Assembly: GCF_016433145.1 (NCBI RefSeq) | Contig: NC_058130.1 | Span: 127,906,922 to 127,970,921, forward strand | From: Gracilinanus agilis | Lineage: Eukaryota | Direction of reading: 5' to 3' | Length of the DNA: 64,000 bases | In this document: piece after piece, positions 6,025 through 63,412 of the stretch | Layout of the letters: each line of letters begins with the position of its first letter | Numbering within the stretch: the first letter of the stretch is position 1 | Program-made: the position numbers and the translations under genes | The notes under the pieces: model-generated | The model's input: the letters and a program-made list of their open reading frames with translations, nothing else | Database searches by the model: none | What the model was told of the DNA's origin: nothing

Positions 6025-6413
6025 TGTTAGGGTTCGAATGGATGGCCACCAAAGGAACACACGAGGCAATGCAATCAAAGCAGGAGAAAACTTTATTGCC
6101 AGTGCTCACTGGGGGAACTCAGCAAGAGAATCCTGGAGTGGTGCATTTAGATGAGGAAAGATATACATTTTAGGGGCCTGGATATGGGTACAGGTGTCAT
6201 GGAACCAATAGTTACCAGACTCTACTTAGTGGGAGTATTGATCTCTCCTGGTGCCTTAGAAACTTTGATGTTTGGGGTTAGGGCTGCTCTGTTCAGCAAG
6301 GAGTGGTGCTGTCAGGCTATGAACTATGAGCTCCTGATAACCACCCTGCTCGACAGAGCATGGTGCTGTCAAGCTATGAGTTACAAGCCCCTGGTTTATG
6401 ATTACGCACTACA
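6025..6413 (-). repeat. 5' LTR (389 bp)
   Basis: Direct repeat of 942-1330. U3 contains an imperfect internal repeat (tggtgctgtca(g/a)gctatga). Confidence 0.97.
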
Positions 6414-21374: not shown

Positions 21375-21552
21375 GTTCTAGTGAAAAATAACAACCTCTC
21401 AGACAAGATCACAGTTTTGCCAGGAAAAATTGAGGAAATCTCACTGCCAGAAACTGTAGATGTGATTATTTCTGAACCCATGGGCTATATGCTATTCAAT
21501 GAGAGGATGCTGGAGAGTTACCTTCATTCCAAAAAATGGTTGAAGTCAAATG
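21375..21552 (+). CDS. CARM1-like: CARM1-like exon ([60 protein letters not shown])
   Basis: ttttctttttgcag acceptor, gtaagt donor, 178 bp. Confidence 0.96.
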
Positions 21553-24500
21553 GTAAGTTGCCTGGCAGGACTATACAAAGCCCTTTCTCCCTTAGAAATT
21601 CTTCTAACTTTTCACTCTAGGGATATCTGAAAGGAATATAGTTGTAGCTGAAAAGGGAAGAGAGAAAGAGAAGCAAGGGGAACAAGTATTTTATTCCTTA
21701 GACCTTTATAAAAAATATTTAATCACTTCCATAGAGTAACTATCAAACTTTCAAAAAGAAATCAGTAGGTAAAATAACATTGGACTGATGAATTAGTATT
21801 GTGTATTAGAAAGAGAACTACCCTGAGAATACTACTCTCAACTCAGTCATGGATACGGGCTGGCTCTACACTGATCTGCTAGGTAGCCTTGAATACTTTG
21901 AACTAGATGATCCTGAGGTCCCTTCCAACTCTGACATACCATGATCTGCCAAAAGCTTTTTATTCTTAGCTACTCTTCTCTTCTCTCTGTCCCTCTTTCT
22001 CCATCTTTCTCTTTACCCATAATCACTGCTTATCTTGGAGAATTTTGGGAATGCAGTCCCATCCAATCATTTCAGTGACCGCATGTCATGTGGCTATTAG
22101 AAATGCCCATTTCCAAGATCTCCCTGCTCCCATTACCAGACCTATAGGCCTAAAAGCTTCTTGCCTAAAATTTTTTACTGGAACCTTGGAAGTGATGTGA
22201 GAAGCAACAGTGTTAACTGTTAAACAAGCTCCATATAGGGCAAGCAACTTAGAATTCAATCCTAGACTACCCAGGCATTTAGACTATACTTTGTAATTAC
22301 CAAATGCTTTACATGTATTATCTCACTGGAATCTCACAACAGCCCTGGAAGATAGTTTGTATGGAGATTACACCCATTTTAAAGAAAAAAAAAATCAGAG
22401 AGTTTCAGTGATTTTCTCAAGATTCCCCAGAGCTCAAGCTCCAACCTTTGACTCTGACTGTGATGTCCTTTCCCCTGAGTTAAGCTGTGCCCTCCTTCCT
22501 CCCTTAGAGAATCTGATGGAGGGAAGGAGGGAGTAAACAATCACTCTGAAACCTGCTAGGGTTTGGGGTTTTGTTTTGTTTTGTTGTTGTTGTTTTCAGC
22601 AAACTATACTCCTCTGTGTTTTCTTTAGGATGGCTAACTGCCATTCTTCAAATATGAACATGTCCTTCCCATTGCAGAGCTCTATTAAGAGCTTTATTCC
22701 TTTGGTTTGGGGTTTTGCCATCTCATAAAATTCAAATTCCCCTGTCAGTAGGGAAAAAAAATTTTCAGCTTACTATACCCCATACTCCACTTTCCATCTC
22801 CTGTCTTAGTATCTTTGTCAAGGCAGTTCCCTGCACCACCACTCCCCCTATCTGGAATATATTCCCTCTTCTTATCCACCTCATGGAATCCTCATTTTCC
22901 TCCAAAGCTTACCCTCCTTCAGAGCCATCTCCTAAAGGAAACTTATACTAGTTTTCACCCACCCTACTTCTTACCACTTATTAAAGCCTTTAGCCTAGAA
23001 ACTCTTCTACATGTGTCTTGTGTCTGTGTGTACACAGTTTCTCAAAGTAAGTTTCTCAAAGGTGGAGTTTGTTTCATGTTTTTATTTTCAGATCCTTAGT
23101 GCCTAGGACAGTGGTGAGCACACTGTAGGTACTTAATAAATATTTAATAAGTGGATGTTAGCTATTCATCCTTCGTTGGGAATAATTGAGATGATTCTAG
23201 CACTAGAAATAAAAAGGGAACGATGCAGGGTGTCCCTAAGTCTTATACAGTTTTAAACTTTTTTCAAAACCTTTAGTAATTTAAATTTAAAGCCTTAATA
23301 TTAAAACTATCATAAATATCTTTACAAATTTAAGTTTAGATAGTTTAAGGAGCTTAAAATTACAGTAAAACCAGGAGCAGCCGTGCAGCACAGTGGCGTA
23401 GTCAGGAGAATTTGGGTTCATTTCTAGCCCTAGACACTTTCTAACTGTGTAACCCTGAGCTAGTCACTTAATCCTAATTGCCTAGCCCTTACCATTCTTC
23501 TGCCTAAGCAGAAGGTAAGCGTTGTTTTGTTTTGTTTTTAAATCATTATACTAAGATTTTGGGGACACCCTGTATACTGCCTTGTCAGTTTATAGCTACG
23601 TGACTTGTTTCTGTTGCACAGACATGGTCACATTTTGGCAAACTGGGTGTCAGTTCATGGAATGGTTGTGGGCTCTGTCTGAGGGAGTTTGTTAACCTTT
23701 ATGTGAACATGTACTTCAATTAGAATAATAGAGAAACTAAATTCTGCGATTCTGTGTGTGTTGTCTTCTGTTCATTAGGGATGATGTTCCCAACATCTAG
23801 TGACATTCATTTGGCTCCTTTCTCAGATGAACAACTCTACAATGAACACTACTCCAGAGCAAATTTCTGGTAATGTCATCTCCTTCTGAACTTATTTATT
23901 TGCTATTTAGGGCCAACCAACTTCAGGTAGGGTCAAGTCAAGTTATTCCATGCCTTAGTGGAAAGAACACAGTTTTTTTTGTTTTTAAATCAGAGGTCCT
24001 GAGTTCAATCCCTGACCCTGCCATTTATTAGCTGTGCAACCTTGAGCAAGCGACTACCCATTTCTGAACCTCAGTCTCCTCATCTGTACAGTGAAGATTG
24101 TCATTGCTGAACACATTTTCTAAAACTTAAATTTGTTATTGTTGTTCAGTCATTTCAGTTATATCTGTCTCTTCATGACCCTTTTGGAGTTTTCTTGGCG
24201 AAGATGCTGGAGTAGTTTGCCATTTCCTTCTCCAGCTCATTTTCCAGATGAGGAAACTGACACAAATGGGGTTAAGTGACTCGCCCAGGGTCAAACAGCT
24301 AATAAGTATCTGAGGCCATAATTGAACTCAGGAAGATGAGTCTTCCTGACACAATACCTGGTACTCTATCCAAACTGTGACATCTAGCTTCCCTTAAAAT
24401 ACCAAAAGAAACCAAAACCCAACAATCCTTAAACATGGCCTGTTATTAGGCATATACCTATGTGACATTGTTTGATAATTCAATTTGACTTCAGAAGACT

Positions 24501-33500: not shown

Positions 33501-36500
33501 ATACAGTAACTTAAGAGATGCCATGTTCAGAGCCCAGAAGCCAATTCGAGCTAGCAGTTTCTTTCAATAAGTCAAATCAATAAGCATTTATTAATTTCTA
33601 ACTATATTCCAGGCACTGTGCTAAGGGCCAGTGATACAAAAAGAAGAGCCAAATGTTTGTGCTTTTCCTTTTATATCTGTCTCATCTCTACCTTTGAAAT
33701 ATGGCCTCTTCAAAGTCCAGCTCAGGTGTCAGCTCTTTCAGGGTACTTGCTGTGATGCTCTAGCTGAAAATGAGTTCTTCTTTCACAAAATTGGCATCAA
33801 GTGCTTTCTCTTCACTTTTCCCTTGGTTTTATCACATTCTACTTTGTGCCATCAGAGTAGCGAGGTGGTGCTGTGGATAGGATCGTAGCCTTAGAATCAG
33901 GAAGGCTCATCATCAATTCAAATCCAGTTTCAGACACTTCCTAGTTGTTGTGACCTTGGGCAAATCACTAAACCACATTTGCCTCAGTTTCCTCATCTGA
34001 AAAGTGAGCTAGAGAAGCAAATGGCAGACCACTCCAGTATCTTTTCCAAGAAAACCCCAAATAGAATCACAAAGAGTTAGACAGCTCTGGAAAAATTTCT
34101 ATAGAACCACAAATTTTATGCTAGGCATATTTGCATATATGTCATATCTCCACCACCCTCATTAGACTTTAGACTTCCTGAAGGAAATCATTGCCCTAAG
34201 TAAACAATCAAATAAAAAAAATACTGAACTTGGAGTCAAAAGATTTAGATTGAAATCTCAACTGGGACACTTAGCAGACATGTGACAGTCCCTTAGCTTC
34301 TCTGATCCTTCATTTCACCTTCTTCACATTAGGAATGATAATTAATATTCATGCTACCTCCTTAGGAAGGTCAGAATGAAAACACTCTGCCAAATGTAAA
34401 GGTGTTGAGATACAGTGAGGTGAAGTCACTCCCATCTGTCTCACCTCAATTTGACACTCTTCTTGGGGATCCCTCTCTTCTTTCAAGGCTTAACCCAAGT
34501 TCCCCCTCCCACTGCTAAGGCTTTTCCTGATCCTCCCAGGCAGTAGCTCTTCAAGCAGAGAATAGAGGACCAATCACTCCTGGTATGTTATAGAGGGGAT
34601 TCTTCCTCCAATTCAGATGAAACCAAATGATCCCTGAGATCCTTTCCAATGCTCAGATTTGGTGTTTCTGTGGTGGGTGTCTNNNNNNNNNNNNNNNNNN
34701 NNNNNNNNNNNNNNNNNNNNNNNNNNNNNNNNNNNNNNNNNNNNNNNNNNNNNNNNNNNNNNNNNNNNNNNNNNNNNNNNNNNNNNNNNNNNNNNNNNNN
34801 NNNNNNNNNNNNNNNNNNNNNNNNNNNNNNNCTCTCTGTTTTCTCATCTTTTTCAAAAGGGTTCAGATAAAATCAAGTCCTGGGACAGTTCAAGATCTTG
34901 CTTTCATTCCTTTATATTCCAAGTCCTACAGAAAATTATAGAGGTTGATTTATACATACATACATATATATATATGCATATATATATATATTATAGTGAA
35001 TAGAGTATTTTACCTGAAGTATAGAAGACCAAGTCTTCCTCTGATACTGTGACCCCAGACAAGGCATTTAACTTCTGTCTTCCTCAGTTTCTTCATCTAT
35101 AAAATGGGATAATAAAAGTACCTACCTCCCAGGGTTGTTAAAAGTATAAAATGATATTTATAAAATGTTTGCAAATTTTAAAGGCAGTATATAAAGTTAT
35201 TATTATTGTTATATATATTTATTTTTATTGTTATTATTATCGTTGTTGTTAACTGCTCTTTGTAGTTGAATAAAAGTATTAGAATGTAAGTTTATCCTTT
35301 CTAAGCATGCCAAAAACAACTTTAACACAATTCAAGTAGTAGACAGGGCTATAATATGTACCCCATCTCATTCTCATGTGATTGTGATCTCATGGGGCCT
35401 CTATATTTAGAAGTTTTTTCATTCCATGTAACTTGGAAAAAAAGTATTTGGTATGCTAAGAGATATTCAAATATTGTCTTTAAGTTTTCAGAATTGTTGT
35501 TAAATCTAGGCAACTGTAGGCAAAAGTTTTTGTCTGTGATAACAGTCCAGTATCCTGTAGAGACTGAACTCTCCAGACTATTTTGAGGTCTGTATCTGTA
35601 TTTGTTATCTTTTATTCCATGAAAGACAGAGAGCTTCTTGTTAATGTAATTTTAGCTTCCTAAGTACCCTATTTACAGCCTTGCTGTGACGTATTGCACT
35701 CTCTCCACTATTTCCTTGTATAACCTCAATGGATCATGAAATCCAGAACCCTTAAAGATAATGCTTCTGTAGTTTCTGATGGTGATAATCTGGTATTGAG
35801 TTGCCATTATAAACCCCTTTCTTTCCACCAAAAAAAAAAATCTTCATGACTTAGAATTTATTCAACACTTTTTGCTAATATATTATTTGTTAAGTTCATG
35901 CCAACATTGCCCAAGGGAAGTCTTCTGAATCCACTTTTGAATTTTAGCTATTTCATAGACTCCATCTGAAAGTAAAAGACACATTTGGTTCCATTTGACA
36001 TAATTTGCATCTCCAGTGCCAAGCATGGTTCCTGGCACACAGGAGGCACTTCCTAAACATTGGTGGAATTATCAAAGACAAAAAGGCCTATTTTTGTAAA
36101 AAGCCTTTAAAATGGAAGGAAAGAAAGACAACATGCCATAATGGGTAGAGAGCTAGCCTCAGAACCAAGAATTCCTGGTTTTAAGACCTGCCTTCATATT
36201 TTGGCCACATAATCCTGGGCAAGTCATGTAAATTCTTAAGTGACTCTAAGGCAGTAACTTGCTGAGAAGGTGCTGATCTACATTGTTGTAGGGAACTTGC
36301 TCACTAAGGAGTACTCTAAACTAATAAAATCACAGTTCTAGGTCCCCCTCCTTGCCAAAAAAAAAGTATGAAAAAATAAATTTTCTTGACCCTTTACAAT
36401 CATTTGTGCCAGAAAATTGACTTGTACCAAGACATCTTACAAATCACTAAGAATAAATGATTGACTCAATCAATAAGCATTTATTAAGCATCATAAAATT

Positions 36501-39500: not shown

Positions 39501-42500
39501 GAGTGTCGAGGGGTCTTATATAGAAGGTTTTTTTCTGATTCTAACAAGCCGATAGTCTGAATGCACTCAGCCATTTGATTCGCAAGTGATTCCCACATTG
39601 GTAACCAGCCATTTCTATTCTATTGAGATATTTTCAGGATTGTTTTTAGGTGAATTTGATGATTGCCATGCCCAATGCCTTCCATCTCTCTCTTCTTAAA
39701 GTTTTCATGGCATACAGGTATGAGGGTCCTGTGTTGTCTACAAGCCTCCCTCATTTCCTGATCCTGTTATATTTTCCAGTGTATTTTTCGCTACCCTTCA
39801 CTATAATCACCTTTACATTAAACTCAGTGAACATCAAGGTTTGGAAGCTCTTATCTAGTTATTCCTAGCATCTCTCTACTTCTTCATCTTCTGCAATACA
39901 TAAAGATGGGCACATAAGCTACAAATATCTTCAGGTTTTCTTTTTGTTAATGCTCATCATGGATTCTCCAAGATAAAGTGACCAATTATTATAACAAAAT
40001 TATTTCTTATTGCTCTTGGACCCATAATGAAACAATCTCCCCAGACTCCTATATTTGGCTAAGAACCTGTGGGCATTGTATCTACTTAGCCTCAACTGAT
40101 TTAGACTTCTAGTTTCCTTTATAATGAGAATATCGATATCAATGTGGTTCATTTCCATACATCAGCTTTGTCATCATTCTCACCTTGAGAATTCCACAGT
40201 TAAATTAATTTGTAGATTTCCATATGCAAAGAATTAGTCATCTGATGGACAACCTACTGGTGATGCAATTCTCTATACTTGACTAAGCTTTTACTATTAT
40301 AATCAATCAGCAGGTATTTATTAGTCACCTATTAAGTTCCAGACATTGAACTAGGCACTTGGGGTACAAATTCAGGAAGTAATTTCTGCTCTCAAAGAGC
40401 TTCCCTTCTGACAGATGAAACAATCTGCTCATGTACAAATACATATAAATATATACAGCTTCAATGACCTGTCCACAGACACTATGGCTACTCTTTAAGA
40501 AAGTAGAGACTCTTGGGTATCTTACAATGAACTGTGATGGCTGAAGGAGTTTCTACTATTAGACAACTAAGTTTGAACTGCCATTTTCCTGAGGAAGAAG
40601 ACTGATAGTTAACTTTCATTTGTGAGAAAATTGAGTGTTAACTGTCGTCATGTGAAAAACTGAGTCTAAGAGTGTTAACTATCATCTTTAGAGAGATCTA
40701 GATGGAGGGAATTAACTGCCACCTGGAGAAGCCAGATCATGAAGGTTTTTAAAAGCCAAAGGAATTATCTGTGATCATAAAAGTAATAGGGTACCACTGG
40801 AATTTGTTGACTAGGGGAATGACTTTATAAAAATCACTTTAACAGCTGTAGGGAGAGACTTGAGGCAGAGACATCAATTAGATTATTGTAATAGTCTATG
40901 AGAAGTGATAAAGGCTTGAGGTAGTGTGATAGAGAAAATGTGAGTAGAGAAAAGGGAAGCTATGAAATAATTATGATGTAAATCTATTTTTAAGATTTTT
41001 AATAAAGGGAATTTTTGTAATATTCTTGGGTTATATACACTCAATTAAAAAAAAATTTAACCTTTACCTTCTGTCTTAGAACCAATACTATATTGGTTCT
41101 AAGATAGAAGAGTAGTAAGGGCTAGACAATCGGGGTTAAGTGACTTGCCCAGGGTAATACAGCTAGAAAGTATCTGAAGCCAGATTTGAACCTCCTGTCT
41201 CCAGGCCTGGCTCTCTATCTACTGATCCACCTAGTTATCACTCTATTGTCTATTATTATTGCCTGGTGAATTCCTACCTTTCTTTTAAAACCCAATTCAA
41301 TATATTACAATATGCTATTATTTATGATATAATATATATTTATCAGACCTGTCACTTCGTTACTGCAGGAAATGGGATACTCCCAATATAAAAATTGCTT
41401 CCACCAACATCACTTATTTGTAAATCATAGTCTTAGAGTATTGCCTTACAGCATTAGAAGATTAAGTGATTTGTCCTTGGTTACAAGCTAATAATGTGTG
41501 TCAAAGAAAAGACTTGAACCTACATCTTTCCAACTCTTAATTATGGTGTCATTCATTATTCTATGTTGCTTCATGATGTTTAATTACATTTGTCAGTACA
41601 AACAAGGGTGGTCATGATATGTGGGCAACTGCCTACCTGGTATGATCTACTCAGTAAATAGAACTAGGAAACTTTCCAGCCCTAAGAGTCTTTCCCCACT
41701 GTCCTACTAAGACATGTCCTCCTCCATTTTATTTAATTTTTTTCTCTAGTTTCCAGAAACCCTTAATTTTTCAGCCATAGTAGATATCACTGATCCAGCC
41801 TCCCAAGAAGTCTCATGTACTCTTGACCTTCAGAGCACCAAAGACATAGACTAACCCTGTGATCTACCTGATAAAAGGTCATTTTTTTGTCCATATGACC
41901 CAACGTTTTATCAGGTTCCTTCAAAGACATTTAGAAGTCACATTCTAAATTCTGTAGACAGACTGCTATCCTATCCTATCCCTCTGGACTTTCAGAGAGG
42001 ATTAGCATATACCCTGGCTCTCAACCCCAAAAATTATACTCTCTGTTACTCATTCTAGGTACCAGCAGAGTTTCTATGGGGTCAATCTTTCCAGCCTCCG
42101 TGGTGCGGCCGTGGATGAATACTTCAGACAGCCAATTGTAGTAAGTGTACTCTCTCTTTCTGGGGCTTGGCATCCTTACCAGAACAACTTTTGGAGATGG
42201 AAATGGCTGCAGGAAAACCATGTTTCCATATGTTTTAGCTCTTTTTTTTTCCTAGTTATTCAAGATTACTGGCTTATCTTGATTAGTCCTTCATGTGCTC
42301 TTTCTTAGACAACTCCTATAAAAAGAGACATATTCAAGGACATTAATAATAGCTCAGAGGCTATCTCAAAAGTTTATCACCATATAATTTGGTCTTCATG
42401 GTCAGCGTCACTACAGTACACTGGGGCCATCCATGTAGCTTCAAGGAAGATGGTATTGGTTGAGACAAGACATCCTTTCTTTCCTCTTGAGGAGTCCTAG

Positions 42501-45500: not shown

Positions 45501-48500
45501 CAGCCACAAGCTTGAATTACTAGTTCAAACCACTAGACTTTTTAGTTTTTTATTGAAAAAGGAAAGGAAACTCTTTCAGATCTTTGTTCTGGACTTAAAA
45601 TGACTTTAAAATGTCTCTCACATTTTGCTAAACACAAAACAAGACCCATTGGACTTCTCTGATCAATTCCTTTGTCTCATTAAAGTACTCACACAACACT
45701 TAACAATTCCAATCTGTTTTCCTTGGCTTTGGTGATACCAATGCCAGTTAAGAAAACTGAGGAAACAGAAAATTCTGTGGGGCAATTTATAACTGCCTTT
45801 GTCTGCCACCACATACACAACAGAAGAACTGCTTGTTTGGGGAGAAATTTTATTTAGGAAAAACAGGATAACTAAGATGATGAGTTTATCTTCCTTCTCC
45901 TATAGAATATGAAAAGATAGGTCTGGGGAAATTCTTGGGTTTGCTGTGACATAGTATGAAGTAGATAGAGTACCAGTCCAAGAGTCAGGTCATATTCCTG
46001 AGTTCAAATCCAGCCCCAGCCATTTATTAACCATATGTAACCATGGGCAAGTCACTAGACCCTGTTTCCCTCAATTTCCTTATCTGTAAAATGAGCTGGA
46101 GAAGTAAATAGCAAACTATTTCAGTATCTTTGCCAAGAAATCTCAGATGGGTTTGCCAAGAGTCAGACATGACTGAAATAATTGAACAATAGCAAATATG
46201 AAGGAAAAGTCAGAAAAAAAAAGAAGAGCTTAGTCTTATTATTGTTTAATACTATTGCTATTATTGGTGATTGCTCACATCTATATAACACTGATATTTA
46301 CAAAGGATTTTTCATAACCATCTTGTAAAGTATATATATCCTTATTTTGCAGTTAAGGAAACTGAGACTTGAGTTATTACTTTCCCATCATTAATGTCTT
46401 TTAAATTCTACCTCCAAAATATTTTCATAGCTATCTTTTTTCCTAACATGATTGGTTCTCTTGTATAAACTCTTTTCACCTTATTCCTCCAATTCAATTT
46501 CTGAATTGATTTCATTTTCTACCCCTTCTCCTACTCTCTCTTCCAGCCAAACTAGCCCAGTTGCTGTTCTTCAAATATAACATTCCATTTCTTGCCTCCA
46601 CAAGTTTGCACAGGTTGACCCTTATGCCAGCAATGCTATCTTTCCCTCATCACTTCCACCTCTTTTAATCACTTAGCATCCTTTCAAGGCTCAGCTCAAA
46701 TGCCATGCCCTACACAGGCCTCCCAAATTGTTAGTGTACCCCCCCATGAAATTACTTCGTATTGCCTTTGTATGTATTTGGTATTTACTTAATCTGTATG
46801 CATGTCGCTTCTGCCAGTTAAAATAAAAACTCCTTCAAGGATTAGGGTGTTTTATTTTGTCCTTTAATCCCTAATAACTAGCACAGAAACTGGCATGCAG
46901 TAGGCACTTAGTAAATACTGAATTAAATTAACAAATACCCCCCAAAAATGTGTCTGTTTCAAGGAGAAACTGGGGAACTATACAGTTCTACAAAGGCAAT
47001 CCATTCCATTCCCTTCCTCCTGTTTAATTCTAGGCCTAGTTCATTGTCTGCTTACTGTATTGTATAATTACAGATATATTGAAGATATAACTACTGATGG
47101 ATGAGCTCAGTGGCCTATCTGAATTTAGCTGGTACAGTTCTTGGAAAACAGACAAAAAAACTTGCTGGAAGTATATGCAAAGCTTTTCCAAAATGGTACA
47201 ACCTACTAGAATTTGTTTTCTTCTGGCACAGCCTTCAGAAATTCAAAGTTGCCTCCCCAACAACACAAGTCATTAGAATAGGATTTTATAGAGGTCCGAT
47301 TCATTATCATGCCTTATTAACTATATCTATTCATTCATCAAATCCCCTTTCTGGAATACATGTTCCAAGAAATCAGGCACCATATTTTATTTGGACTTTC
47401 TATCTTCCCTAGCATCTTACACAAAGTGGGCATTTAATAAATGTTTTTTGAATGAATAAATGAATGGATAAAATTGTCCCTCCCATATTGGGTTTAACTT
47501 AAGAACTTGACATTGGATCTAGAATTGATGCTTCATAATTCCATGATGCGCAGAACTTTTTGGATAAACACCAATATAAACACCAGCATAATTTATCTTG
47601 TCTAGTTTATCTTGACAAAATATAAACATCCACGATTATTTTCCACAGGATACATTTGACATTAGGATTTTGATGGCTCAGACAATTAAATATACTGTCA
47701 ATTTCATTGAAGCCAAAGAGGAAGACTTGCACAGGTTGGTGTGAATCATTATTGCTTCTGTTCTTTCGTAATTTTAATCTCACTCCAACCCCATCATTCC
47801 CCCAAAAAAACTCAATGTTGGATTTTACTACATAGTCCATGAAAAGATTAGGTTGGGGTCATGCATATGTAAAGTTATCTTTCTCTGGAGAAACTTTTGA
47901 GGGTTGAGCACTGGTTTGGTTCTATCTTACTAGAAAGTGATATGTTTCCCATGGGATCCCTTATAATTGTTTTACTTCTTTCTCCCCAGGCAGACCAATA
48001 TTTTTATGCAATTGTTTTTAGAGAGGAAGTTCAGGCACAGAAATATTGCTTTCTTCCCAGGGATACACAAGGAGCAAGAGATTGAAACTCCACAGTGTAC
48101 CAAGCTAAGACATGAAATCATAGGCTATAGAAATGGAAGGGACCCTGGAGATCATTTCCTATTCTTCTGTTTTGGGGAAACTGAGATGCCTAAAGTGAGA
48201 GAAGATCCCAACAGATTTCTATTTGCTTCGGAAGCCTTTGCTTCCCACAGAGCACCTCATGAAGACCAGGCAGCATCTCACATGAAATATCTATTAAACT
48301 AGTTAATAAACTGTCAAGTGCTATACACATATTAGGTATTTATAATTAGTATATCCAGCAGAAAGTAAAACAGTGAATTATTTAAGGCTAAAGTTTTAAC
48401 TCAAAAGTTGTTTTTATAGTTTAGATTATAAGAAGGTGAAATTAGCCTAATACAGCCTGATGCTTGGTAAAAGATACACTTTCTTTTGGGTGGAAAAAAA

Positions 48501-51500: not shown

Positions 51501-54500
51501 CCTGCATGAGATTAGTAGTTGATCTAAGCCTGACCATAATCCAAATATAATTTCTGGTGGGAAAGCAATGGCTTAGAGAGCATAAACATTTTGCAAAAAC
51601 CTTACTTTAATGCTCATCATACTATGAAAGTAATCCTGCATCCCTGAGGGGTTGTGACACTGGAACAAAAGTTCCACTGGGTATAACCAAGCTGGAAAGA
51701 CATGATTTGGAAAGAATATGGTCCTGGCAACAGACTGTATCTGCTACCTAAAGACTAATCTAGCAAATTATGGTTCTGATAATGTATGTTAACTGAGAAT
51801 CAGATAGGGTAAAGTAATCAAATTAAATGCTGATAGGAACATTGAGAAACAGATATAATATTACATTGCTAGAGTATCTGTGCATTTGTTTTTTTGGAAA
51901 ACAAGATTCAAATATACATCAAGAGCTATAAGACTATTCATGCTCATTGACCTAGGCATTAATGAGAAGGTAAAAAATTGTGTATGTATGAAAATATTCA
52001 TGGAAATTTTGTTTGTTGTGACAAAATAGCTGGAAATAATACAATGCAATAAATGGGGGAAATGGCTAAATAAATTCAGATATGGTGGATTGTATTGTTA
52101 TTAGAAGTTATAAATATTAGAAATATAAAGAAAATAAGGGGAATATATGATGAGATGAAAAAAGGAGAATAAAAAATAATACATACCATGATTACATTTT
52201 TTTAAATAGCCACAAAAATCAAGGGAAAAAGGATCCGAGTAAAAAAATAATCCAAAGGGAATTCAAAAGCAGAGAATGTTTATAATAGCATGTATACATA
52301 TAATTTACATATTTTTAAACAAATTTTAAACAATGGGGAATTTGCAATCTTGCACATAACTTTTTATGCTTTTAGTTAAATGTTTTTTATTGATAGTAGT
52401 GGTTACTAAGTATATAATAAAAAATAAAAAAAGAAAAGAAAAGAAAGAAAGTCATCTTTTTAGAGTCCTAAAGTCCCCTCCAAATGCTATAGTCATTCTA
52501 ATGTAATTTTTAGTATTCTGATGATATAATTCTCTGGTCCTAGAGTTCTTTCTATATCTGTCATTATCAGTCAATTAAGATATACTAAGAGGGAAAGTTC
52601 AATGCTCAATGCTATAGCAAATATAGTCTAAGAATAAAAGTTAGTAGAATCTTAGCAAGCTAGCTTTGATGTCACAGAAAGACCAATAGAATCAGAAGAC
52701 CTGGGCACCAATTCAAATTCTACCCCATGTGACCTAGGACAAGTCACTTCCCCTCTCTAGTGCTTCAAGATCTAAAGTCCAACTTCCTTACTTTATACAG
52801 ATAAAGAACCTAAGCCCTGGGCTTAGCTTGAAGGTCCCTTCAATTTGCAGACCTGTGAAATATGGTCCAGGTGTATCTTATTTTTGTATCCTCAAAAGAC
52901 TTTTTCATTCTTTTCCTACAGAGTGGAAATTCCCTTCATGTTTCATATGATGCAATCTGGCCTCATCCATGGCCTGGCCTTTTGGTTCGATGTGGCATTT
53001 GTTGGATCACTGTATGTATAATAATAATTGTAATAATAATGACAACTCACATTTCTCTAAGGTTTACAATGTACTTTCCTCACAACACTAACCCACCAAG
53101 GTAGACAATGCAGGTATTATTCCCATTTTACAATGGAAGAAGCTAAGACTCAGAAAGTCAAGCAGTTTGCCCAAGGTCACAATGCTTTTAAATGGTAGAG
53201 CAGAGACTTCCACCCACCCAGACCCTCAGCTCCAAGACTAGTACAACATTCTTTCACCTAGCATTTTTGTAGCATTTTGAAGGTTGGAAAGAGCTTTCTG
53301 TGTTACCTCATTTGATCCTATGAATTCTAACTTCAAGGAGAAAAGTTATGATATTAGTAATTTTGTGATGTTTGTGACCTGGAAATATTTCCTTTTACAG
53401 ACCTACTATGGTATAACCAAATCTCTTGCCTTTTTTCTAACACAAGAGAGGTAGAATGGCATAAGTTGAGCTTGAATTCAAGAAGACCTCTGTTCAAAAT
53501 CTGGCTGTCACATACTAACTAGCACTGTGACTCTGGACAAGTCATTTCTCAGTTGTCCCAAGCAACTACAAGTTGTAGAAAAGTTGGTGATCTGTTTTGG
53601 CAGATGCCATTTCCACACCTGGAATTCCCTATACCAATGAAATCCTAGCTCTGAATCCCATCCACCCAAGTCTTTTTCTCCCCAGTAAATATGAACATAG
53701 TCACCTGGCCTTAGTGCAGGCGCATGTGGCTGAGAATTTTAAGTTGATTACTCTCACTCTCTTGCCACAGTATTTCCTCCAGATTCTAGTTTCCCAGACC
53801 AGAACCTTTAATTGCAGATTAAATGTGTGTAGAATAACAATAGCATCTATCTATAGGTGTTTTATATATACATATATAAAACACCTATAGATAGATGAGA
53901 ATCAAAAGGAAAAAAAGCACTGAGCACAGTGCCTGGCATAGAGTAAGTGCTTCATAAATGCCTGTTCCCTTCCCTTAAAGATTGTTTGTGACAGAATGTG
54001 GTATTCCTGCAGGCTCCCTTTCTGGCTTGAATATAGGCTGCTGACTTGTTTAAGGAAGTAAAAAGCTAGCCTCGTGGCTTTATTGCCAAATCTTCATTTG
54101 CCTTTAAATGTTGTATAACCCCTCCAATTCCTCAGCAAGAGATGGAGGTAACCTTGGGGTCTCTGACGTTCCAGTGGCATTTATATTGTTATGAAAGCAA
54201 ATAAGGATGGGGTTGCAGTCTGTGTCACTCTTCTCTCACTCTCTTATGTTTCCTACCCCCAATCTGCAATTCTCCCAATTCTCCCTCTCCTTCAAGCTTC
54301 TTTCCATTCTTCTTGAGATATATTGATTATACCAACAGGCCAGAACTTGTATTCATCCACATATGCAAGTGTGCACATAACCCAAGAGCAATCTGTTAAA
54401 TCCATTATCTTAGCCCTAGCCTCTTCCAATCTTTAGCACACTTACAGAATGAGAGAATTTCCAAAGCAGGAGAGACCTCAGAGAACCTCCTGTCCAATCC

Positions 54501-54632
54501 ACACTGGCACAGGACTCTCCTTTATGCCATCCCCAACAGTGGTTACCCAGTCTTCATTTGAGGACCTCCAGGGACTGAGAGTTTGTTACTTGCTGGAAAA
54601 TCAAAGCTATTTTCCTGTAACTTTCTAGCCAC

Positions 54633-54673
<41 letters not shown>

Positions 54674-57600
54674 GTGTCTCTCTCTCTCTCTCTCTCTACC
54701 TCTATTTCTCTGCGTGTCTTTCTGTCTCTTTCTCTGTCTGACTGTCTGTCTGTCTTTCTGTCTCTGTCTCTCTCTGTCTGTCTGTCTCTCCCATACACAA
54801 TCTTCAATTTCCTAACTAAATTGCTAACTAAATGCATGCAGCTACTACTGCTTATAATAGAGTATGACATTCTAGTTCAGGACAATGCTAATCATTCATC
54901 TGTTTCTGGCCCTTTATATTAGATCTGTGCTACCACCATTGAGGAGTAAGGAGAAGTTGGAAGATGACATAATATAGAAGAAAGAGCCCTGAATTAGGAG
55001 AGAGAAAAGCTGGGATAAAACCATATCATAATATTATAGACTTAAAAATAGGCATGGCACCAACTTCTTCAATATCCTGGCTAGCTGTCTAAAGTTTTAT
55101 GATGGTCATTTTGTTTCTTGTATTGTTCTTAAAGTACAACACTTAAGGGAAGAATCATAGAATAGTAAATTTAGAGATGGAAGGGTAGTTGGAGGCCATC
55201 TAGTCTGGACCCTCCCCCCCTACCACTACCTGATTTCATGAAAGGAAACTGAGGTCCCAAGAGGTTAAATGACTTTCTTGGCCTTACTATTCACTCCCTG
55301 ATTTTTGGCAAGATCTTTCACCTAACCATGTGATTCTGCCTTTAAATAGGTAGACAAATTTCAGTCCCACATTTTAAAACATAAGAACTATTCTTAGTTG
55401 ATGGGCTATACCAAAGAAAAAAAAAAGGCAAATGGGCTAGATATTATCCTCAGGCCATAATTTGCTGACGCCTACTTTAAATCATAGATCTAGAGTTTGA
55501 AGAAATTATAGAAACCCTCTAGTCCTACTTCCTCATTGAGGAAAGCGAGACCCAGAAAAGTAAAATGATTTATCCAGGGTCACACAAACAAGATTCTATG
55601 ATTCTACAGGTTCGAGTAACTTCTCATGGGTTATACAGCTAGTAAATATCTGAGGTCAGACTTGAACTCAAGAATAGCCACCAGCCTCTCTCTCTATCCA
55701 AATGGAGGAAATCCTGTTGAGCTTGTCAATCCTACATAATGGAAAAGGGGCTTGAGGAATCCAAGCCAGAGGACTGTTGGATTTTTCTAGGGAAATGAAG
55801 AATTTTGAAAGGAGACCCGAGTTCCTATTGCCCTTTGTTTCTTTTTTGGCTTGACAGGGTCACAGTCTGGCTGTCCACAGCCCCAACAGAGCCCCTGACT
55901 CACTGGTATCAGGTGCGCTGCCTCCTTCAGACTCCTCTTTTTGCCAAGGAAGGAGAAACTCTCTCAGGGAAAGTGCTCTTTGTAGCCAATAAGCGGTAAG
56001 TAACCAAGCTCCAATAAGTAGCAGTTTTCTGCTTTGTTAACTAGGCTGGTGAGGGGTAGGAGAGACACCAGAAGCTTCACAGAGCCCCTGAGAAGATGGC
56101 TTTTAGAAGGGGACAGGAGATTTGACCAGGGTCAGCTGGTTTTCTGTCTCCACTAAATCTGCAGGATGGAATTTCACTCCTGGCCTGGAAAACAGAAAAG
56201 AAGGGGATTGCTTCAGACAACTACACGGGCAGCCTTTTGCAGTGGACTGAGAAGGAAGAAAGAAACTTATTAGTTCATCATGGTTCTACCAAATGATTTG
56301 ATTTAGCAAGCCTGAGAGAGACACACAGACAGACACAAACAGACACAGACAGAGAAAACAGAGAAGAGGGCAACAGGATGCCTTCACCTAGCCGTATACC
56401 ACCAAATTTAGTGCAACAAAATTGACTTTTTACTGTAAAGGAAGTCATTGCTGCAGCAGCACATAATTTATTTGGCTGCTTCATTATGCTAATAGATTTA
56501 ATAATGTTCTCACATCAGTTACCTTGGTTTGCCTTTTTTTCCCAAGTAAACTTTATTTCTACTTTGCAGTCGTCATCAAAGAGTTTGATTTTCTCCCTTA
56601 GAGTGGGAGAGATGCAATGGGACTTTGGGTCCTTAGTGCCCTGACTCCCCATCTGCACGTGGAAAACATTCCTTGTAGAATTCTTAACTAGAAACCACCT
56701 TAGCATTAACCTTTCAAATTACCTCAATTGACAACAGAGGCCCAGAGCTGGGACATCACTTGTCCAAGGTATTATAGAACCAGAATTTGAACCAGGACCT
56801 TTGATTTTTGTCTGGTACTTTCCCTCACTGTACCACATTGCCCCTGTAACTGTGCTGTCACTCCTCATGGGTTTGTTGTTCATTTGTTTCAGTTGTGTCC
56901 AACACTTCGCAAGCCCATTTCAGGTTTTCTTGGCAAAGGTATGAGAGTGGTTTGACATTTCCTTTTCCAGCTCATTTTACAGATGAGGAAACTGAGGCAA
57001 ACAGGGTTAAACAACTTACCTGGGGTCACACAGCCAGTAGAAAGCGTCTGAGGTCACATTTGAAATGAGGTCTTCCTGACTCCAAGCCTGGTACTCTATC
57101 CACTGTACCACCTAATCATCCCTCCTTATGGGTATAACATCTTATGAAAATTGGTTCATGAAGCAATTATTTTCCTATTCTCGGTTTTATAGCCAATGGT
57201 AGAGACAAGGGTGTGCTGGCAAATGTTTAGCAACAGACTACCTGGGAGAGCAGGAATGGGTGGGAAATGGTCTTGGGATTCACTTTTACGTTTAATCTGT
57301 ATTATTAACATGTTCTGAACTCTATCCAGCCAAAAAAAGCAATAAGTCAATTCCCGATTTGTAAAATTTGCCAATTTTAGATATATAAATGCTCACCCTG
57401 AAAATCCGATGGTTAGCTTTGGTTCAGGCTGGTTTGAGCTGGCTCCAACATGCCTAGGGAAAGAAGCTTGATGCTCACTGATAGCTGCAGACTCTATCTA
57501 CCTATAATTGAAAAGTAAACAATCCAGTGAATAGGCAGGTTTGGGTTTTTTGGTTTTATTGTCTACCTCATCTAATACTTAGTATGACTGCTTTGTTCTG

Positions 57601-60600
57601 AAGTCTTAGAAAAGGAAATACTTTCAGGGAGACAGGTGGTGTCATGGATAGAGTACTAGAAGTAGAGTCAGAAAGTCTTGAATTTAAGTACAATCCCAGA
57701 CACTAGTTATGGGACCCTAGGAAAGTCACTTAACCTATCTGCCTCCATTTTTCTCAACCATAAAATGAGGATAATAAAATAATAAAATAAATAAAAATAA
57801 TAAAATAAATTTAATTTAATTTAATTTAAAAATTTTAAAAAGCACCTACTTCTGAGGCCATCATGAGGGTCAAATAAGATAGTATTTGTAAAGCACTTGG
57901 CATCGCGTGTAAGATTTCCTAAAGGGGAATCACCTGCCTCAGTGGGATCATTCTCCATCACTGGAGGTTTTCAAGTATATCCTGACTGACCATTTATTGG
58001 CAATGTGGGTGAAGGGTCTCTTGTTCAAGTAAAAGTTAGACTGAACACCTGGGGTCCCTTCCAAGTTTGAGATCTAGTGATTTGGTGAATGAGACAAAAT
58101 GGTGTCATAAAAAGAGTGTGGAGTGTGAGGATGTTAGAAGAACTAGCTTCAAGCCCAGACTCTCCTTACTATCCTATACTTTTCTTACCTTTAAGATTGG
58201 GGGGCACGAGGAGGTGTTTGACCCTTTGACCCAGTAATACCATATGAGGCTATAAAGAGCAAGAGCTGAGAGAAACATTTTTGAAATAGAATGTTGGACC
58301 TGCAGAGGAACAGAATGTCGGTTGGAAGGACTGCAGGGGATCTTGGGAAAAGAACCCAAAAGGGAGAGCTGTTTGGGGGAGAGGGAGAGGAGAGAGGAAA
58401 CAGGAAAGCTTGCCCCAAAGTGAATAATGACAGAGAGAAAGGATCCGGACGCATGAAATTATTTCTAGCAACTCTTTGTGAGTCAACAAACTAGAAACTA
58501 AAGGAGTAACCCATCCATTAGGGAAAGGGCCAGCAAATGATGGTAGATGATAGTCATGATATACCATTGTGCTGGAAAGAGTTTCAGAGAAACCTGGAAG
58601 TCTTGTATGAACTTTTGCAATGTGAAGGGAGTAGAACCAAGAGAAAAGTAATGACCATTTAATAGAGACAAACAGTTTTGAAAAACTTAAGAATACTAAT
58701 CAGCGCCATGATTCCAGAGGATCAGCGATGAAACATGCTACCTACCTTAGGACACACAGAGGTGATGGACTTAGAGCACAAAATGAGGCAGGTTGTTGGG
58801 GTTTTTTTTTAAAGACGTTGTCAATGTGGAATTTTTTTTTTGCTTGACTATTTGTATTTGTTACAAGGGCTCATTTTCCCCTTTGTTAAGGGAAGGAAGA
58901 TAAAATAGATATTTTTGTTCACTGAAAAAAGATTTTTTTTTTAAAATGAAAAGTATTGGTTTAGTTTTCTAATATTCCTTCCAGCCCTGACATTCTGTGA
59001 TCCTGTGATTCATTGCATTACTTTTCAGGCAGTTACAGGAAAAGATTCTGCACCCCCAATTAAGCAGGAAGGGGGCACATAGAGATATCAAATATTTTCA
59101 TTTAGTACCTTGATAATGCCACTCTAGCAAAAGAACTATAAAGGCTGATTATAAGTTAATGTGTTTTTTGTTTGTTTGTTTTTTGTATTACAGACAGAGT
59201 TATGACATTCAGATTGTGGCCATAGTGAACCAAACAGGCTTCAAGTCGGGTAATATTCTTGATTTAAAGAACCCATTTTTTAGGTAAGAAAATTGCCCTC
59301 ACTATTTTAAATGTATGTGAAATGTATGATCTGATTTGATCAGCAGCATAAATAGAGACAACACGACTCTGTGTTACCAAAAGGCAAGGGAAAAAAACCA
59401 ACAATAGTAGGAAACTTAAAAATAGACTCTACATACAAGATGGTACAGTGGATAGATTGCCAGGCCTGCAGTCCAGCAGACTCATTTGCCTGAGTTTAGA
59501 CACTTAAAGAGCAACGTGACCCAGGCAAGTCACTTGACCCTGTTTGCCTCAGTTTCTTATCTATAAAATGAGCTGGAGAAAGAAATGGTAAACCACCGCA
59601 ACATCTTTGCTTAGAGAACCCCAAATAGGGTCACAAAGAGTCAGACAAGTCTGAAACAACTGAACAACAGCAATACAAATAAGTACTGGCTTTGGAAAGG
59701 TCCTGGGTCCAAATCCAGATTATTCTGTTAATTAATAATGTAACCTTGGCCAAGTTATTCCTTTCTTTCAGCCTCCATTTTCTCATCTATAACACATAAT
59801 GAGGCTAGTCTAGATGATTTCTAGACCCTTACCAGATCTAACAATCTATGAATTTATATGATGTATTTATTATTAGAAAATTAGTTTCTAGAATTAGTTT
59901 CTAGGAAAGTTCTAGAAATAATTCTAGAAAAATTGTAATTAGAAAAGAGATAAATTAGGAGTCAGAGCCTCTTTGCATAAACTTGATAACTCATTTGTCC
60001 TTTCTGGGTCTGTTTTCTCAAATGTTAAGTAAGGAAGTTGGACTCTTATCATCACTAAGATCCCTTCCAGCCCCAGCATTCTGTGAGATAAATGCAATGG
60101 GAAGAAAACTGGTATTGGGTTCACAAGATCTTTGTTTCAATCCCAAGTCTGCTATTTATTAAAATCAAAATGGGAAATCCAAAAGGAACCTTAGAGGTCA
60201 TCTAATCTGACCCTTTCTCCAAGTAGTAAGTGACCAAGCTAGGATTCAAAATCACTGGTCTCCAACCAGTACTATTCCCACTATATCCCATTGACTCTCC
60301 CAACTCTGTGATTATGAATGAGTCACTTAATGTCTCAGCCTCAGTTTCTCATTTGCAAAATGAGAATAAAAAATAGTTGCTCTTTTTGCCTGAGCAGACT
60401 GCTAAAGTCTCAAATGAGATATTACATATAAAACAGTAAACCTTATTGTTACAGATTAATGTTGATATTATTTACCATATTTTAAATAGTATGTTCCCAT
60501 GTCATATTTAAATTTTGACTCCATTGCAGTGCAAGTTTCCAGGAACATCTCTACTGTGTAAAGTTAAGTTTTGCCATTTTGTTTCAATGATGTAGATTTA

Positions 60601-61835
60601 ACATTAATTTCTTGAAAATTTTTTCCATACTTTCTACGACTCTTCAAAACAAACTAATTTAAAATCCAAAAATGGAAATCTGCCACTAATTCAACAAGTG
60701 ATTTCCACTAATTTGGGCTTCTCTTATTAAAAATCTGAGTGTTGAGTTTTCTTGTTTAATCATTTGTCTGGAAAGCTTATATTCCAACTGCCTTTGGCAT
60801 TTATGATATTAAAACATATGAGAAAGAAAGGAAGTTCAAGAATTTCCTTTAAATCCACTTTCAGAAATGAAAAAATAACCCATTTTATTTCCAGTGGAAC
60901 TTTACTCTTAAAAAGTGCTTCTCTCCTAAGCAACCTTGTGAGGTAGGTAATACAAATATTATGGCCTCTACTTTTTAAATATGGAAACTGAGGTTTGGAG
61001 ACCTGGAAGGGTCATACAATGTATAAGTGTCAGAACTAGGATTTGAACACAAGTGTCTCCTCATTTGAGGGCTCATTTCACCTCTCCAGGGCCCCTCTCC
61101 ATGTGCATGTGCCCACAAGTAGGCTAAGCCTTAAAATATAAAGTGAAACAAAGACCCAGGAACAAGCCATGTGAGCAAATGATTTGGAAGAAAAAGAAGT
61201 GAGCCTTTGCAATACATTGATAATCTTGGGTTTAAATTGATTAATTTTTCTCCAGTATTAGATTGAATCAAAGGAAACAGGATCAATTCCTGGGTTCCCC
61301 CACTTATTCTGTGACTTTGGGAAAGCCACCTAACTGCAGGGGAAGCCAATTACTTTATCTATAAATTGGGGCAGTGGGGAGAGGGTGGCTATAGACTAGA
61401 CCATCTTTGACTTTAGAGATGGAAACAAGCTGTCCCTTCTAACTTTAAATCCAGTGACTATTCTTGCTCCCTCCACATGAAAAAGACAGTTTCTGCCCTC
61501 AAGGAATTTGCATTCTAAGGAGGGAAGACATTTAATAGAAAGCTGAAAAACTGAAAGTGGGGGAGAGGGAAGAAGAGCTTCCTGGGTTTGTCTGTTGGAC
61601 GCAAAAGAAATTCTGAAGAGTCAAGAAATAGAAGGCAGAGAGGAATCAAGAAGGGAACCAAGTGAATGAATGCATTATTTTGTTTAAAGGACCCTAAGGA
61701 TTCTGGAAGACTACAATTAGCTAAACTCTCAGCCTATTTAAAAAAAAAATATTCCCTCCATTTAGGTATCTCAGATGGCCCTCCTGGCCTCCAGAAGCTG
61801 GGAATTCATTTTATCTTCCTTCTGTGGAAGACTAG
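21375..61835 (+). CDS. CARM1-like: CARM1-like (PRMT4 paralog) arginine methyltransferase, 8 exons, 5'-partial
   Basis: Exons 21375-21552, 23779-23869, 42059-42140, 47649-47734, 52922-53011, 55858-55995, 59194-59283 and 61766-61835 total 825 nt. All introns are GT-AG and phases are consistent, with no internal stop. Double-E loop [18 protein letters not shown] and THWYQ loop are intact. Confidence 0.93.
23226..23572. mobile_element. Tc1/mariner-type MITE with nested SINE
   Basis: TIRs cagggtgtccc / gggacaccctg, TA at the 3' end. SINE fragment at about 23373-23540. Confidence 0.7.
23779..23869 (+). CDS. CARM1-like: CARM1-like exon ([30 protein letters not shown])
   Basis: ttcattag acceptor, gtaatg donor, 91 bp, phase 1 to 2. 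Confidence 0.95.
27105..27305. mobile_element. hAT MITE, 201 bp
   Basis: TIRs caggggtcggcaac / gttgccaacccctg. Perfect 8-bp TSD ggccagag (27097-27104 and 27306-27313). Confidence 0.92.
29431..29745. mobile_element. Tigger-like MITE, 315 bp
   Basis: TIRs caggtatccctcccacat / atgtggaagggatacccg (16/18), flanked by TA on both sides. Confidence 0.88.
31998..32186. mobile_element. hAT MITE, 189 bp
   Basis: TIRs cagtgatgggcaaact / agtttgtccattactg. 8-bp TSD cactatac/caccatcc (6/8). Confidence 0.85.
34683..34831. other. Assembly gap (149 N)
   Basis: Run of N. Confidence 1.
38509..38718 (-). mobile_element. tRNA-derived SINE
   Basis: Full-length copy with poly-T tail and TSD atggtccat on both sides. 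Confidence 0.88.
42059..42140 (+). CDS. CARM1-like: CARM1-like exon ([27 protein letters not shown])
   Basis: cattctag acceptor, gtaagt donor, 82 bp. Confidence 0.95.
43541..43743 (+). mobile_element. tRNA-derived SINE with internal deletion
   Basis: Head gggagcagctgggtagctcagtgg, A-rich tail, repeat taaattgagaagagaga on both flanks. Confidence 0.85.
47649..47734 (+). CDS. CARM1-like: CARM1-like exon ([29 protein letters not shown])
   Basis: ttttccacag acceptor, gttggt donor, 86 bp. Not in the ORF track; found by reading the sequence. Confidence 0.95.
48960..49260 (+). mobile_element. CR1/L3 3' relic
   Basis: ttctgggcatctcatttttgaaaggatattgaaaaactggag... is typical of the CR1 3' end. Contains a 21-bp tandem duplication of gaagggctatcatgaaagaa. 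Confidence 0.65.
50940..51490 (+). mobile_element. L1 ORF2 endonuclease relic
   Basis: tgtaatgggataaattcacat...atatattgtttacaagaaac (similar to NVNG.NS...ICCLQET). The ORF 51185-51436 fragment NLYAP.../KIIKVVDFN is L1 EN. Confidence 0.8.
52922..53011 (+). CDS. CARM1-like: CARM1-like exon ([30 protein letters not shown])
   Basis: ttttcctacag acceptor, gtatgt donor, 90 bp. Confidence 0.95.
53844..53897. repeat. Perfect palindrome, 26-bp arms with a 2-nt spacer, inside a MIR-like element
   Basis: catctatctataggtgttttatatat-ac-atatataaaacacctatagatagatg. Confidence 0.96.
54632..54790. repeat. Compound (TCTG)n/(TC)n microsatellite
   Basis: Directly visible. Confidence 0.95.
55858..55995 (+). 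CDS. CARM1-like: CARM1-like exon ([46 protein letters not shown])
   Basis: ttgacag acceptor, gtaagt donor, 138 bp, contains the THW loop. Confidence 0.96.
59194..59283 (+). CDS. CARM1-like: CARM1-like exon ([30 protein letters not shown])
   Basis: ttttgtattacag acceptor, gtaaga donor, 90 bp. Confidence 0.95.
61766..61835 (+). CDS. CARM1-like: CARM1-like probable terminal coding exon ((R)[22 protein letters not shown])
   Basis: ttccctccatttag acceptor in the right phase. The peptide aligns to CARM1 [20 protein letters not shown]. TAG at 61833-61835, AATAAA downstream. Confidence 0.72.
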
Positions 61836-61972
61836 ATGATTGTAGGTGGGGAGGCCCCTTGTTAGAGACTCCTGAGTACTATGTAACCTTACCAAGTTTC
61901 TCAAATAATTCTGAAGAGTATGTACTTGGGCACATCACATACCATTTAAAAACCATCTAAATTCCATAGGAA

Positions 61973-61978
61973 AATAAA
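61973..61978 (+). terminator. Candidate polyadenylation signal
   Basis: AATAAA about 140 nt after the predicted stop. Confidence 0.5.
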
Positions 61979-63412
61979 TTTTTATTTCAAAATTCAATCC
62001 TCACATTGTTTAGAGGCAACTAGGTATTGATGCTCTAGGTTTGGAGTCAGGAAGACCTGAGTTCAAATTCAATTTCAGAAATATACTAGCTATGTGATTT
62101 CAGGCAAGTCACTTAACTTCTGCCTGCCTCAACTTTCCTCATTTGTAAAATGGAGATGCACCTACTTTCACAGGTTTGTTATGAAGATCAAATGAGATAA
62201 CATATGTAAAAGTATCCTACCAAACTTAATGCACTAGCTAAAAACTCACTCTCAATATTATTATTTTAAAATTAAAGAAGTAAGAAAAAGCTCTGGGGGG
62301 ACCTGAAGTACTGCCTGTTGAGATAAATTAATAGTGAGCTTATTCTAATTTGAAAGACCTTCAAAGATGGTTGCCTTAGTGCTCAGATCCATAGGAGGCA
62401 TGACTGGATTTGTAGCAGCTTAATTGTGATTAATATCTATAGAAATCAGAGCTTTTTATAGGATTTTTTAAAATAGCTTTCCTTTTTACATAGGGTTACC
62501 AGTAGGTCCCAGGTTGGCCACTCTGTTATAATATTAAAAATAACCTACATTTTTGTAATATTTTAAAATTAACCAAGTGCTTCCCTTTCAAGATCCCTGT
62601 GAGGTTATAGAGAATGACTAATTGTATTCCCATTTTACAAGTGGGGAAGCTAAGACCAAGTGACTTCACTGAGATCACAGAGCTAATAAATGGAAGAGCT
62701 GGAAATTTTCTGTAGATTTCCCAACTTGCTCTTCACTCCATCCCATTTTCTCCTTACAAGTATTTCTTTATTAAGCACTTCCCATGTGCCAGGCACTATG
62801 CTGCACACTCAGAGGAGAGTGAAAAGCAAAAACAGCCGCTGTCCTCAAAGAGCTCATTTTTAGTGAGGGAAACATCATTGAGTAACCATGTACCTACAAG
62901 GTAAACACAGAGAAAATCAAGGTAACGTCAGAGGGAAAGCACCAGCAGTGAGGAAGACCAGGAGAGATCTTCTGTGGATGAAGATGGCATTCTCCCAGAG
63001 TTGTGAAGGAGGCAAAGAGGGAGAGCATTCCAGCGAGACAGCCAGTAAAAGGGCATGAAGACAGGAGATGGAATGTCAGATCTAAGGAACTTTATCGTTT
63101 TATTTTAGATTACGTGAAAGGAAGGAAGATAAGATAGAAGGATAGGAAAAGGCCAGAAGGTAGGGGGCCTTCAGTGCCAGAGCACTTTACATTTAATTCT
63201 AAAATTAATGGAATTTATAGAGCAACTACGTAGATAGAGCACCAGGCTTAGAGTCAAGAAGACCTGACTTCAAGTGTGGCCTTGAATGTGTACTAGCTCT
63301 ATGACTTTGGGCAAGTCACTTAATCCTCTTTGCCTCAGTTCCTCATCTGTGAATGAGCTAGAGAAGGAAATGGCAAACCACTCCGGTATCTTTGCCAAGA
63401 AAACTCCAAAAA

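Follow-up and report, generated by a model that had tools for sequence, protein, structure and literature searches.

Evidence for the 3' half of CARM1-like, a second vertebrate PRMT4 gene, in the genome of the marsupial Gracilinanus agilis

Introduction

Which PRMT4 gene lies in this part of the Gracilinanus agilis genome, and is it still a gene? The 64,000-nucleotide stretch analysed here, called the window throughout (contig NC_058130.1, positions 127,906,922 to 127,970,921, forward strand), contains CARM1-type coding pieces on its + strand that are visible already as open reading frames. The initial annotation, made from the letters alone, took them for an intact second CARM1 that marsupials have kept and humans have lost. 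Our analysis indicates that positions 21375-59283 (+) are very probably the last seven homolog-supported coding exons of marsupial CARM1L, or CARM1-like, and encode approximately residues 218-470 of a 470- or 472-residue protein, the second PRMT4 paralog of gnathostomes. Judged from its sequence relationships, CARM1L appears to have arisen before the split between sharks and bony vertebrates, and its human remnant would be the pseudogene CARM1P1 only. The gene is genuine, not new: because RefSeq models of it are on record for at least ten marsupials, it is ordinary as a genomic finding.

Identity of the gene

The exons (A to G, Table 1) were re-derived by motif scans and by reading their boundaries from the sequence, and each was translated and compared singly. 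The joined spliced protein is absent from all searches and from the tree described below, in which database orthologs stand as proxies for the window. Identities were counted exon by exon over the window's 246 whole codons. On this count the window is 98.4-99.2% identical to marsupial CARM1-like proteins (Monodelphis, Dromiciops, Sarcophilus, Trichosurus, Phascolarctos and Notamacropus), 89-92% identical to the CARM1-like proteins of placentals, echidna, turtle and ostrich, 84-92% identical across tetrapod CARM1-like proteins beyond marsupials, and 78-88% identical to the copies of fishes. Identity to canonical CARM1 is 77-78%, alike for mammals, turtle, frog, coelacanth and shark. The initial annotation had put the difference from human CARM1 at about 55 of 252 aligned residues (about 78% identity) and judged it too large for a mammalian ortholog. 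The estimate is borne out by our count of 190-192 identical residues of 246 (77.2-78.0%, ~56 substitutions), and the judgement by the 98-99% identity to marsupial CARM1-like as against 77-78% to canonical CARM1, which also falls in a different clade.

Taken singly, exon A agrees with ten marsupial CARM1-like proteins at 58 of 59 residues, exons D and E agree with marsupial CARM1-like at 28/28 and 29/29, and exon G at 28-29 of 29. Exon B is identical to marsupial CARM1-like at 29/29 residues and to canonical CARM1 at 19/29; the corresponding values for exon F are 45/45 and 36/45. Exon C matches Monodelphis CARM1-like at 27/27 positions and the Australian marsupials at 26/27. Two database proteins, Monodelphis XP_016279723.1 and Trichosurus XP_036594585.1, are identical to the window at 244 of 246 residues, with the same exon order and the same end after KNPFFR.

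Searches with single exons agree with this assignment. In the PDB, exon A matches CARM1 chains with E ~5e-28 as against 6e-14 for the next family, PRMT6, and exon F matches the Pfam domain PRMT_C (E 1.9e-6). An exhaustive, profile-free search with exon A returned some proteins that are 85-93% identical to it, clearly nearer than canonical CARM1. Among the matches listed in a word search from the CARM1-like protein of Tinamus were ~100 proteins of 450-515 residues, which come from sharks, ray-finned fishes, coelacanth, amphibians, reptiles, birds, echidna, marsupials and many placentals, and most of which carry the NCBI name 'histone-arginine methyltransferase CARM1-like'. The 90% cluster around the Sminthopsis protein includes a turtle protein and RefSeq models from ten marsupials (Sminthopsis, Sarcophilus, Antechinus, Dromiciops, Vombatus, Phascolarctos, Trichosurus, Petaurus, Notamacropus and Monodelphis). 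Taken together, these comparisons support the reading of the window gene as the second PRMT4, CARM1-like.

Phylogeny and synteny

A maximum-likelihood tree (model LG+C20+F+G4, 493 columns; supports given as ultrafast bootstrap/SH-aLRT) was computed from 24 short (CARM1-like) and 16 long (CARM1) proteins, together with 5 from cyclostomes and 4 from invertebrates. The window is not a row of this tree; its proxies are marsupial proteins with two to four differences from it in 246 positions. CARM1-like proteins form a clade with support 100/99 and canonical CARM1 proteins form another with 86/99, and since each of the two spans chondrichthyans to mammals, the duplication predates the gnathostome ancestor. 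With the cyclostome rows unresolved and the invertebrate outgroups long, the claim about timing stops at that ancestor. Marsupial CARM1-like proteins are monophyletic (100/100), sister to those of placentals (99/97), and their terminal branches measure 0-0.005 changes per site. The marsupial proxies lie inside the gnathostome-wide CARM1-like clade and apart from canonical CARM1, as the initial annotation's second PRMT4 predicts.

The coexistence of both genes can be read directly from several genomes. Both are annotated, on contigs that differ in length, in Mirounga, Leopardus, Mustela erminea, Manis and Orcinus, and both proteins are present in Xenopus tropicalis, Latimeria, Heterodontus and Lepisosteus. 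The 45 cluster members listed include no canonical CARM1 of a marsupial; the two-gene state is direct for placentals, frog, coelacanth, gar and shark, and for marsupials it comes from NCBI naming only. CARM1-like is also kept in many placentals, monotremes, birds, reptiles, amphibians and fishes. Of the initial view that marsupials retain a second PRMT4 lost in humans, the paralog stands; what does not stand is that its retention is a marsupial peculiarity, as many other vertebrates keep the gene. The 90% cluster of canonical CARM1 also includes cat HIDE1 (C19orf38) proteins, a clustering artefact to bear in mind when cluster names are read; they probably came in by way of gene models that read through into, or are fused with, the gene next door. 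One cluster listing also has a human and some ape protein fragments, which were left out of the comparisons.

The human counterpart of the CARM1-like locus can be sought through its neighbours. Directly 3' of CARM1-like in gar and tinamou, on the same strand, lies a gene of ~645 residues with PUF and CPL domains, the domain make-up of PUM3. KIAA0020 is the old name of PUM3 (the forms PUF-A/PUM3 occur in two paper titles). Human CARM1P1 is located at chr9:2,923,562-3,073,404, and a single-nucleotide polymorphism at chr9 2,968,377 is labelled 'KIAA0020-RFX3 intergenic' (PMC3772989). A PUM3-type neighbour in gar and tinamou, together with the position of CARM1P1 in the KIAA0020-RFX3 interval, supports the orthology of the CARM1-like clade with the CARM1P1 locus; on these two species and the published coordinates, the two are probably the same ancestral locus. 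Canonical carm1 of Chanos adjoins a Yip1-domain gene and a Tim29 gene, which correspond to YIPF2 and TIMM29, the genes beside human CARM1 on 19p13.2. The comparison with the surroundings of CARM1P1 that the initial annotation had proposed succeeds in gar and tinamou, through this PUM3-type neighbour; the window's own flanks are out of range. Human CARM1P1 (formerly CARM1L, 9p24.2) is a transcribed pseudogene, whereas the exons in the window are open and conserved.

Gene structure

Exons A to G are established. They total 755 nt, that is 251 codons plus a final AG, of which 246 codons are whole within single exons; their phases are compatible, and the split codons (G, W, R, L, R) are those of the homologs. 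No stop, frameshift or splice-site loss is present in these 755 nt, which make up the 3' half of the gene. Between the exons lie six introns, 2.2-18 kb long and bounded by AG/GT sites, and their presence excludes a processed retrocopy, as the initial annotation had argued. Its proposal of eight exons in a 274-residue frame holds for seven exons with AG/GT sites in one frame; the eighth has no ortholog support, both it and the total of 274 residues are doubtful, and we treat it as a candidate. 'Intact', the word used for the gene at the outset, applies to the open 3' half (exons A to G), the first ~217 codons being outside the window.

The assembly gap falls between exons B and C, within an intron of about 18 kb, and leaves the frame untouched. 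Across this junction ...ANF + TG is followed by G + YQQ, which restores a conserved tryptophan (mouse W314), and because all homologs read straight across it with no residue missing, no coding exon is concealed by the gap. The gap length is an estimate.

Table 1. Positions of the CARM1-like exons and associated features in the window
Feature	Positions	Strand	Remarks
Exon A	21375-21552	+	178 nt; ag acceptor before GTT, gtaagt donor after AATG; corresponds to about residues 223-282 of mouse CARM1; holds the double-E loop
Exon B	23779-23869	+	91 nt; AG acceptor, GTAATG donor; phases fit
Assembly gap (N)	34683-34831		within the B-C intron
Exon C	42059-42140	+	82 nt; AG acceptor, GTAAGT donor
Exon D	47649-47734	+	86 nt; found by motif scan; AG acceptor, GTTGGT donor
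Exon E	52922-53011	+	90 nt; AG acceptor, GTATGT donor
Exon F	55858-55995	+	138 nt; AG acceptor, GTAAGT donor; holds the THW loop
Exon G	59194-59283	+	90 nt; AG acceptor, GTAAGA donor; last homolog-supported exon
AGG TAA	59282-59287	+	unspliced exon G donor gives R + stop; fits the 470-aa isoforms
Exon 8 candidate	61766-61835	+	AG acceptor, pyrimidine tract; TAG at 61833-61835; uncertain
AATAAA	61973-61978	+	possible polyadenylation signal, 138 nt 3' of the exon 8 stop; consensus match only

Catalytic motifs and constraint

The double-E and THW loops are intact, as first proposed, and identical to those of mouse CARM1. In the double-E loop, E258 and E267 (mouse numbering) are unchanged, as are E244, Y262, N266 and M269, and the THW loop reads T414-H415-W416 exactly as in mouse.

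Set against ten marsupial proteins, the window has three differing positions, P234, V326 and I461 (marsupial numbering). V326 (42096-42098) is common to Monodelphis only, the nine Australidelphian proteins having L, and I461 is common to Trichosurus and Petaurus; the Monodelphis domestica RefSeq protein differs from the window at two other residues. Each of the three states recurs in canonical CARM1 or among further CARM1-like proteins, and on that distribution all look ancestral. Over the 246 residues, the comparison with the ten marsupials reveals no private derived amino-acid change. Given generally accepted divergence times and rates, such near-identity between American and Australian marsupials would be hard to square with neutral drift.

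At the DNA level, the proportions of nonsynonymous and synonymous differences between the window and tinamou, summed exon by exon, are pN 0.067 and pS 0.71, which gives a ratio of the two substitution rates (dN/dS) of 0.032 with dS saturated; against gar, pS is above the correctable range. The ratio refers to the window and tinamou; a word search of DNA with the open frame of exon A returned exon fragments of placentals, birds and reptiles only (at most 55/59 identical) and none of a marsupial. Constraint over the long term is strong, and from it (no private derived change, dN/dS 0.03) we argue that the gene is functional.

The 3' end

The annotated marsupial proteins have either 470 residues, ending ...KNPFFR, or 472, ending ...KNPFFRYA. 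More broadly, 88 CARM1-like proteins stop within 0-4 residues of NPFFR (29 of them directly, 38 after adding YA and 10 after adding FA), whereas canonical CARM1 proteins run 107-156 residues beyond it. The donor of exon G, AG/GTAAG, is the same in the window, in tinamou (L002:54521-54527) and in gar (L001:33084-33090). Retention of the intron that follows gives R and an immediate TAA, which explains the paired RefSeq isoforms ...FFR and ...FFRYA, and the arrangement appears, from these three sequences, to have been conserved for more than 400 million years. A CARM1-type C-terminal exon is absent from the remaining 4.7 kb 3' of exon G, and the protein would lack the C-terminal region of CARM1 either way, whether exon 8 is used or not.

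The spliced isoform is where the window may depart from its relatives. Marsupial CARM1-like adds 'YA'; the candidate exon 8, if used, adds 22 residues. It continues the frame with R and 22 codons to a TAG, giving 274 residues in all, and begins G TAT (Y) as expected, followed by 21 more codons. It lies 2.48 kb 3' of exon G, and the two-codon terminal exon lies 2.40 kb away in tinamou and 1.7 kb in gar. The DNA alignment of exon 8 with the tinamou and gar terminal exons is ambiguous: MAFFT sets the tinamou exon, from its acceptor to its stop, over the 3' end of exon 8, with the stops coinciding, and not at the exon 8 acceptor. The peptide of exon 8 had no match in a PDB search. There is also a second terminal-exon candidate, ag/G TAT TGA, at 62022. 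A private tail would have parallels, as the predicted Orcinus ortholog has one of 10 residues and a few other predicted orthologs have similar extensions.

Alternative explanations

Could the exons instead belong to canonical CARM1, unusually diverged in this lineage? The best PDB matches are indeed CARM1, though the PDB holds no CARM1-like structure to compare. Such a lineage-specific divergence would have to yield 77-78% identity to every canonical CARM1 compared and 98-99% to marsupial CARM1-like, in a tree that separates the clades with 100/99 support and in which canonical CARM1 differs by less than 2% among placentals; nor is any CARM1-type C-terminal exon present within 4.7 kb 3' of exon G. 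The identities and the tree refute this explanation, and we give it practically no credence. It is also very unlikely that the exons are not one gene but two loci joined by the N gap in a chimeric assembly. The gap does fall between exons B and C, and its length is estimated, but the exons on either side have the order, strand and phase expected of one gene, each is 96-100% identical to one and the same marsupial protein, and tinamou and gar share the exon order. In addition, one sequencing run, which may be the source of the assembly, contains 89% of the sampled words of 52900-62400, a stretch 3' of the gap.

The alternative that bears on function is a unitary pseudogene, inactivated only recently in G. 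agilis: the 3' half would still look clean, with the gene broken upstream or no longer expressed, much as the human lineage came to have CARM1P1. Several observations limit the case for a functional CARM1-like gene here, and some of them lend this alternative weight. The first ~217 codons lie beyond the window together with their exons, where a break is possible; the terminal exon reads unlike the annotated marsupial proteins, which end in R or RYA, having 22 codons in place of a stop that would give the 'RYA' end; a degraded retrovirus occupies the upstream intron; the dN/dS ratio is not specific to marsupials; and four sequencing runs guessed to be RNA each hold 5-7% of the sampled words of 52900-62400. 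The neighbours of the gene are likewise outside the window, which ends 4.7 kb 3' of exon G, so synteny is drawn from other species. Against inactivation, the 755 coding nt have lost no splice site and gained no stop or frameshift, the end of the 470-aa isoform (AGG TAA) is intact, and zero private derived changes in 246 residues would be unexpected after any appreciable neutral drift. Intronic endogenous retroviruses, moreover, are common and harmless. We consider a pseudogene improbable, with a small residual chance, and prefer a functional CARM1-like gene, for which expression in this animal, enzymatic activity, substrates and intact upstream exons are presumed.

Predicted function and significance

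By homology, the product of CARM1-like would be an S-adenosylmethionine (SAM)-dependent type I protein arginine methyltransferase whose substrate pocket resembles that of CARM1. Its predicted architecture comprises a PH-like N-terminal domain, a Rossmann fold, a dimerisation arm and a beta-barrel, the last two of which would be encoded by exons B-G; the double-E loop would hold the guanidinium group and the THW loop would close the active site. Full-length orthologs of CARM1-like, the gene named carm1l in zebrafish, combine the PH-like domain (PF11531) with the PRMT core, and the window corresponds to the 3' half. Canonical CARM1/PRMT4 (mouse, 608 aa; PDB 5dwq, 5ih3, 3b3f) has the same type I core, double-E loop, THW loop and beta-barrel, and in addition a C-terminal region of ~130 residues that CARM1-like lacks.

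The C-terminal region of CARM1 carries autonomous activation and automethylation functions. Because this region is absent, the tail-less product may methylate CARM1-type substrates while lacking the coactivator function of that C-terminal module. Alternatively, it may act as a partner of CARM1. We regard the chances as about even for the broader proposition that CARM1-like is an active tail-less PRMT4, preserved under strong constraint by most vertebrates over more than 400 million years but lost by humans, whose substrates and biology have never been studied, and whose two-codon terminal stop has been lost in G. agilis to leave a private 22-residue tail on the spliced isoform.

CARM1-like is annotated already and functionally unstudied. 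In a literature search the gene itself was met only in passing, as carm1l, most matches to 'CARM1L' being artefacts of Carm1-loxP. Its interest is that of an understudied enzyme present from sharks to marsupials and many placentals, tail-less, with a pseudogene in humans, and a natural tail-less CARM1 could help to separate catalytic from coactivator functions in the biology of PRMTs. The locus also illustrates that a genuine, constrained paralog is recognisable from raw sequence alone.

Upstream region and repeats

The exons for residues 1-217 (PH-like domain, motif I and AVEAS) were not found by motif scans of either strand of positions 1-21374, and a sensitive tblastn search with the Monodelphis N-terminus gave no match there. 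The SAM-binding motifs I and post-I (VLDVGCGSG and AVEAS) are present in the near-identical Monodelphis protein and neither is found in 1-21374. The koala CARM1-like gene spans 251 kb, and with a gene of ~250 kb the missing 5' exons are expected further upstream of the window.

The intron upstream of exon A contains, at 941-6310 on the - strand, a degraded gammaretrovirus-like endogenous provirus. Pieces of its open reading frames match Gag MA (E 3e-32) and Gag p30 (1e-34), two parts of integrase (the core and, with 1e-22, the MLV C-terminal domain) and, for the envelope, TLV_coat (4e-25); most of pol is gone and the frames are broken. Two near-identical stretches resembling long terminal repeats lie at ~941-1232 and 6020-6310. 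Further downstream, the E-F intron contains a CT/GA-rich simple repeat (54583-54922) that produces long non-coding SLSLSL and RDRERD pseudo-reading frames on both strands.

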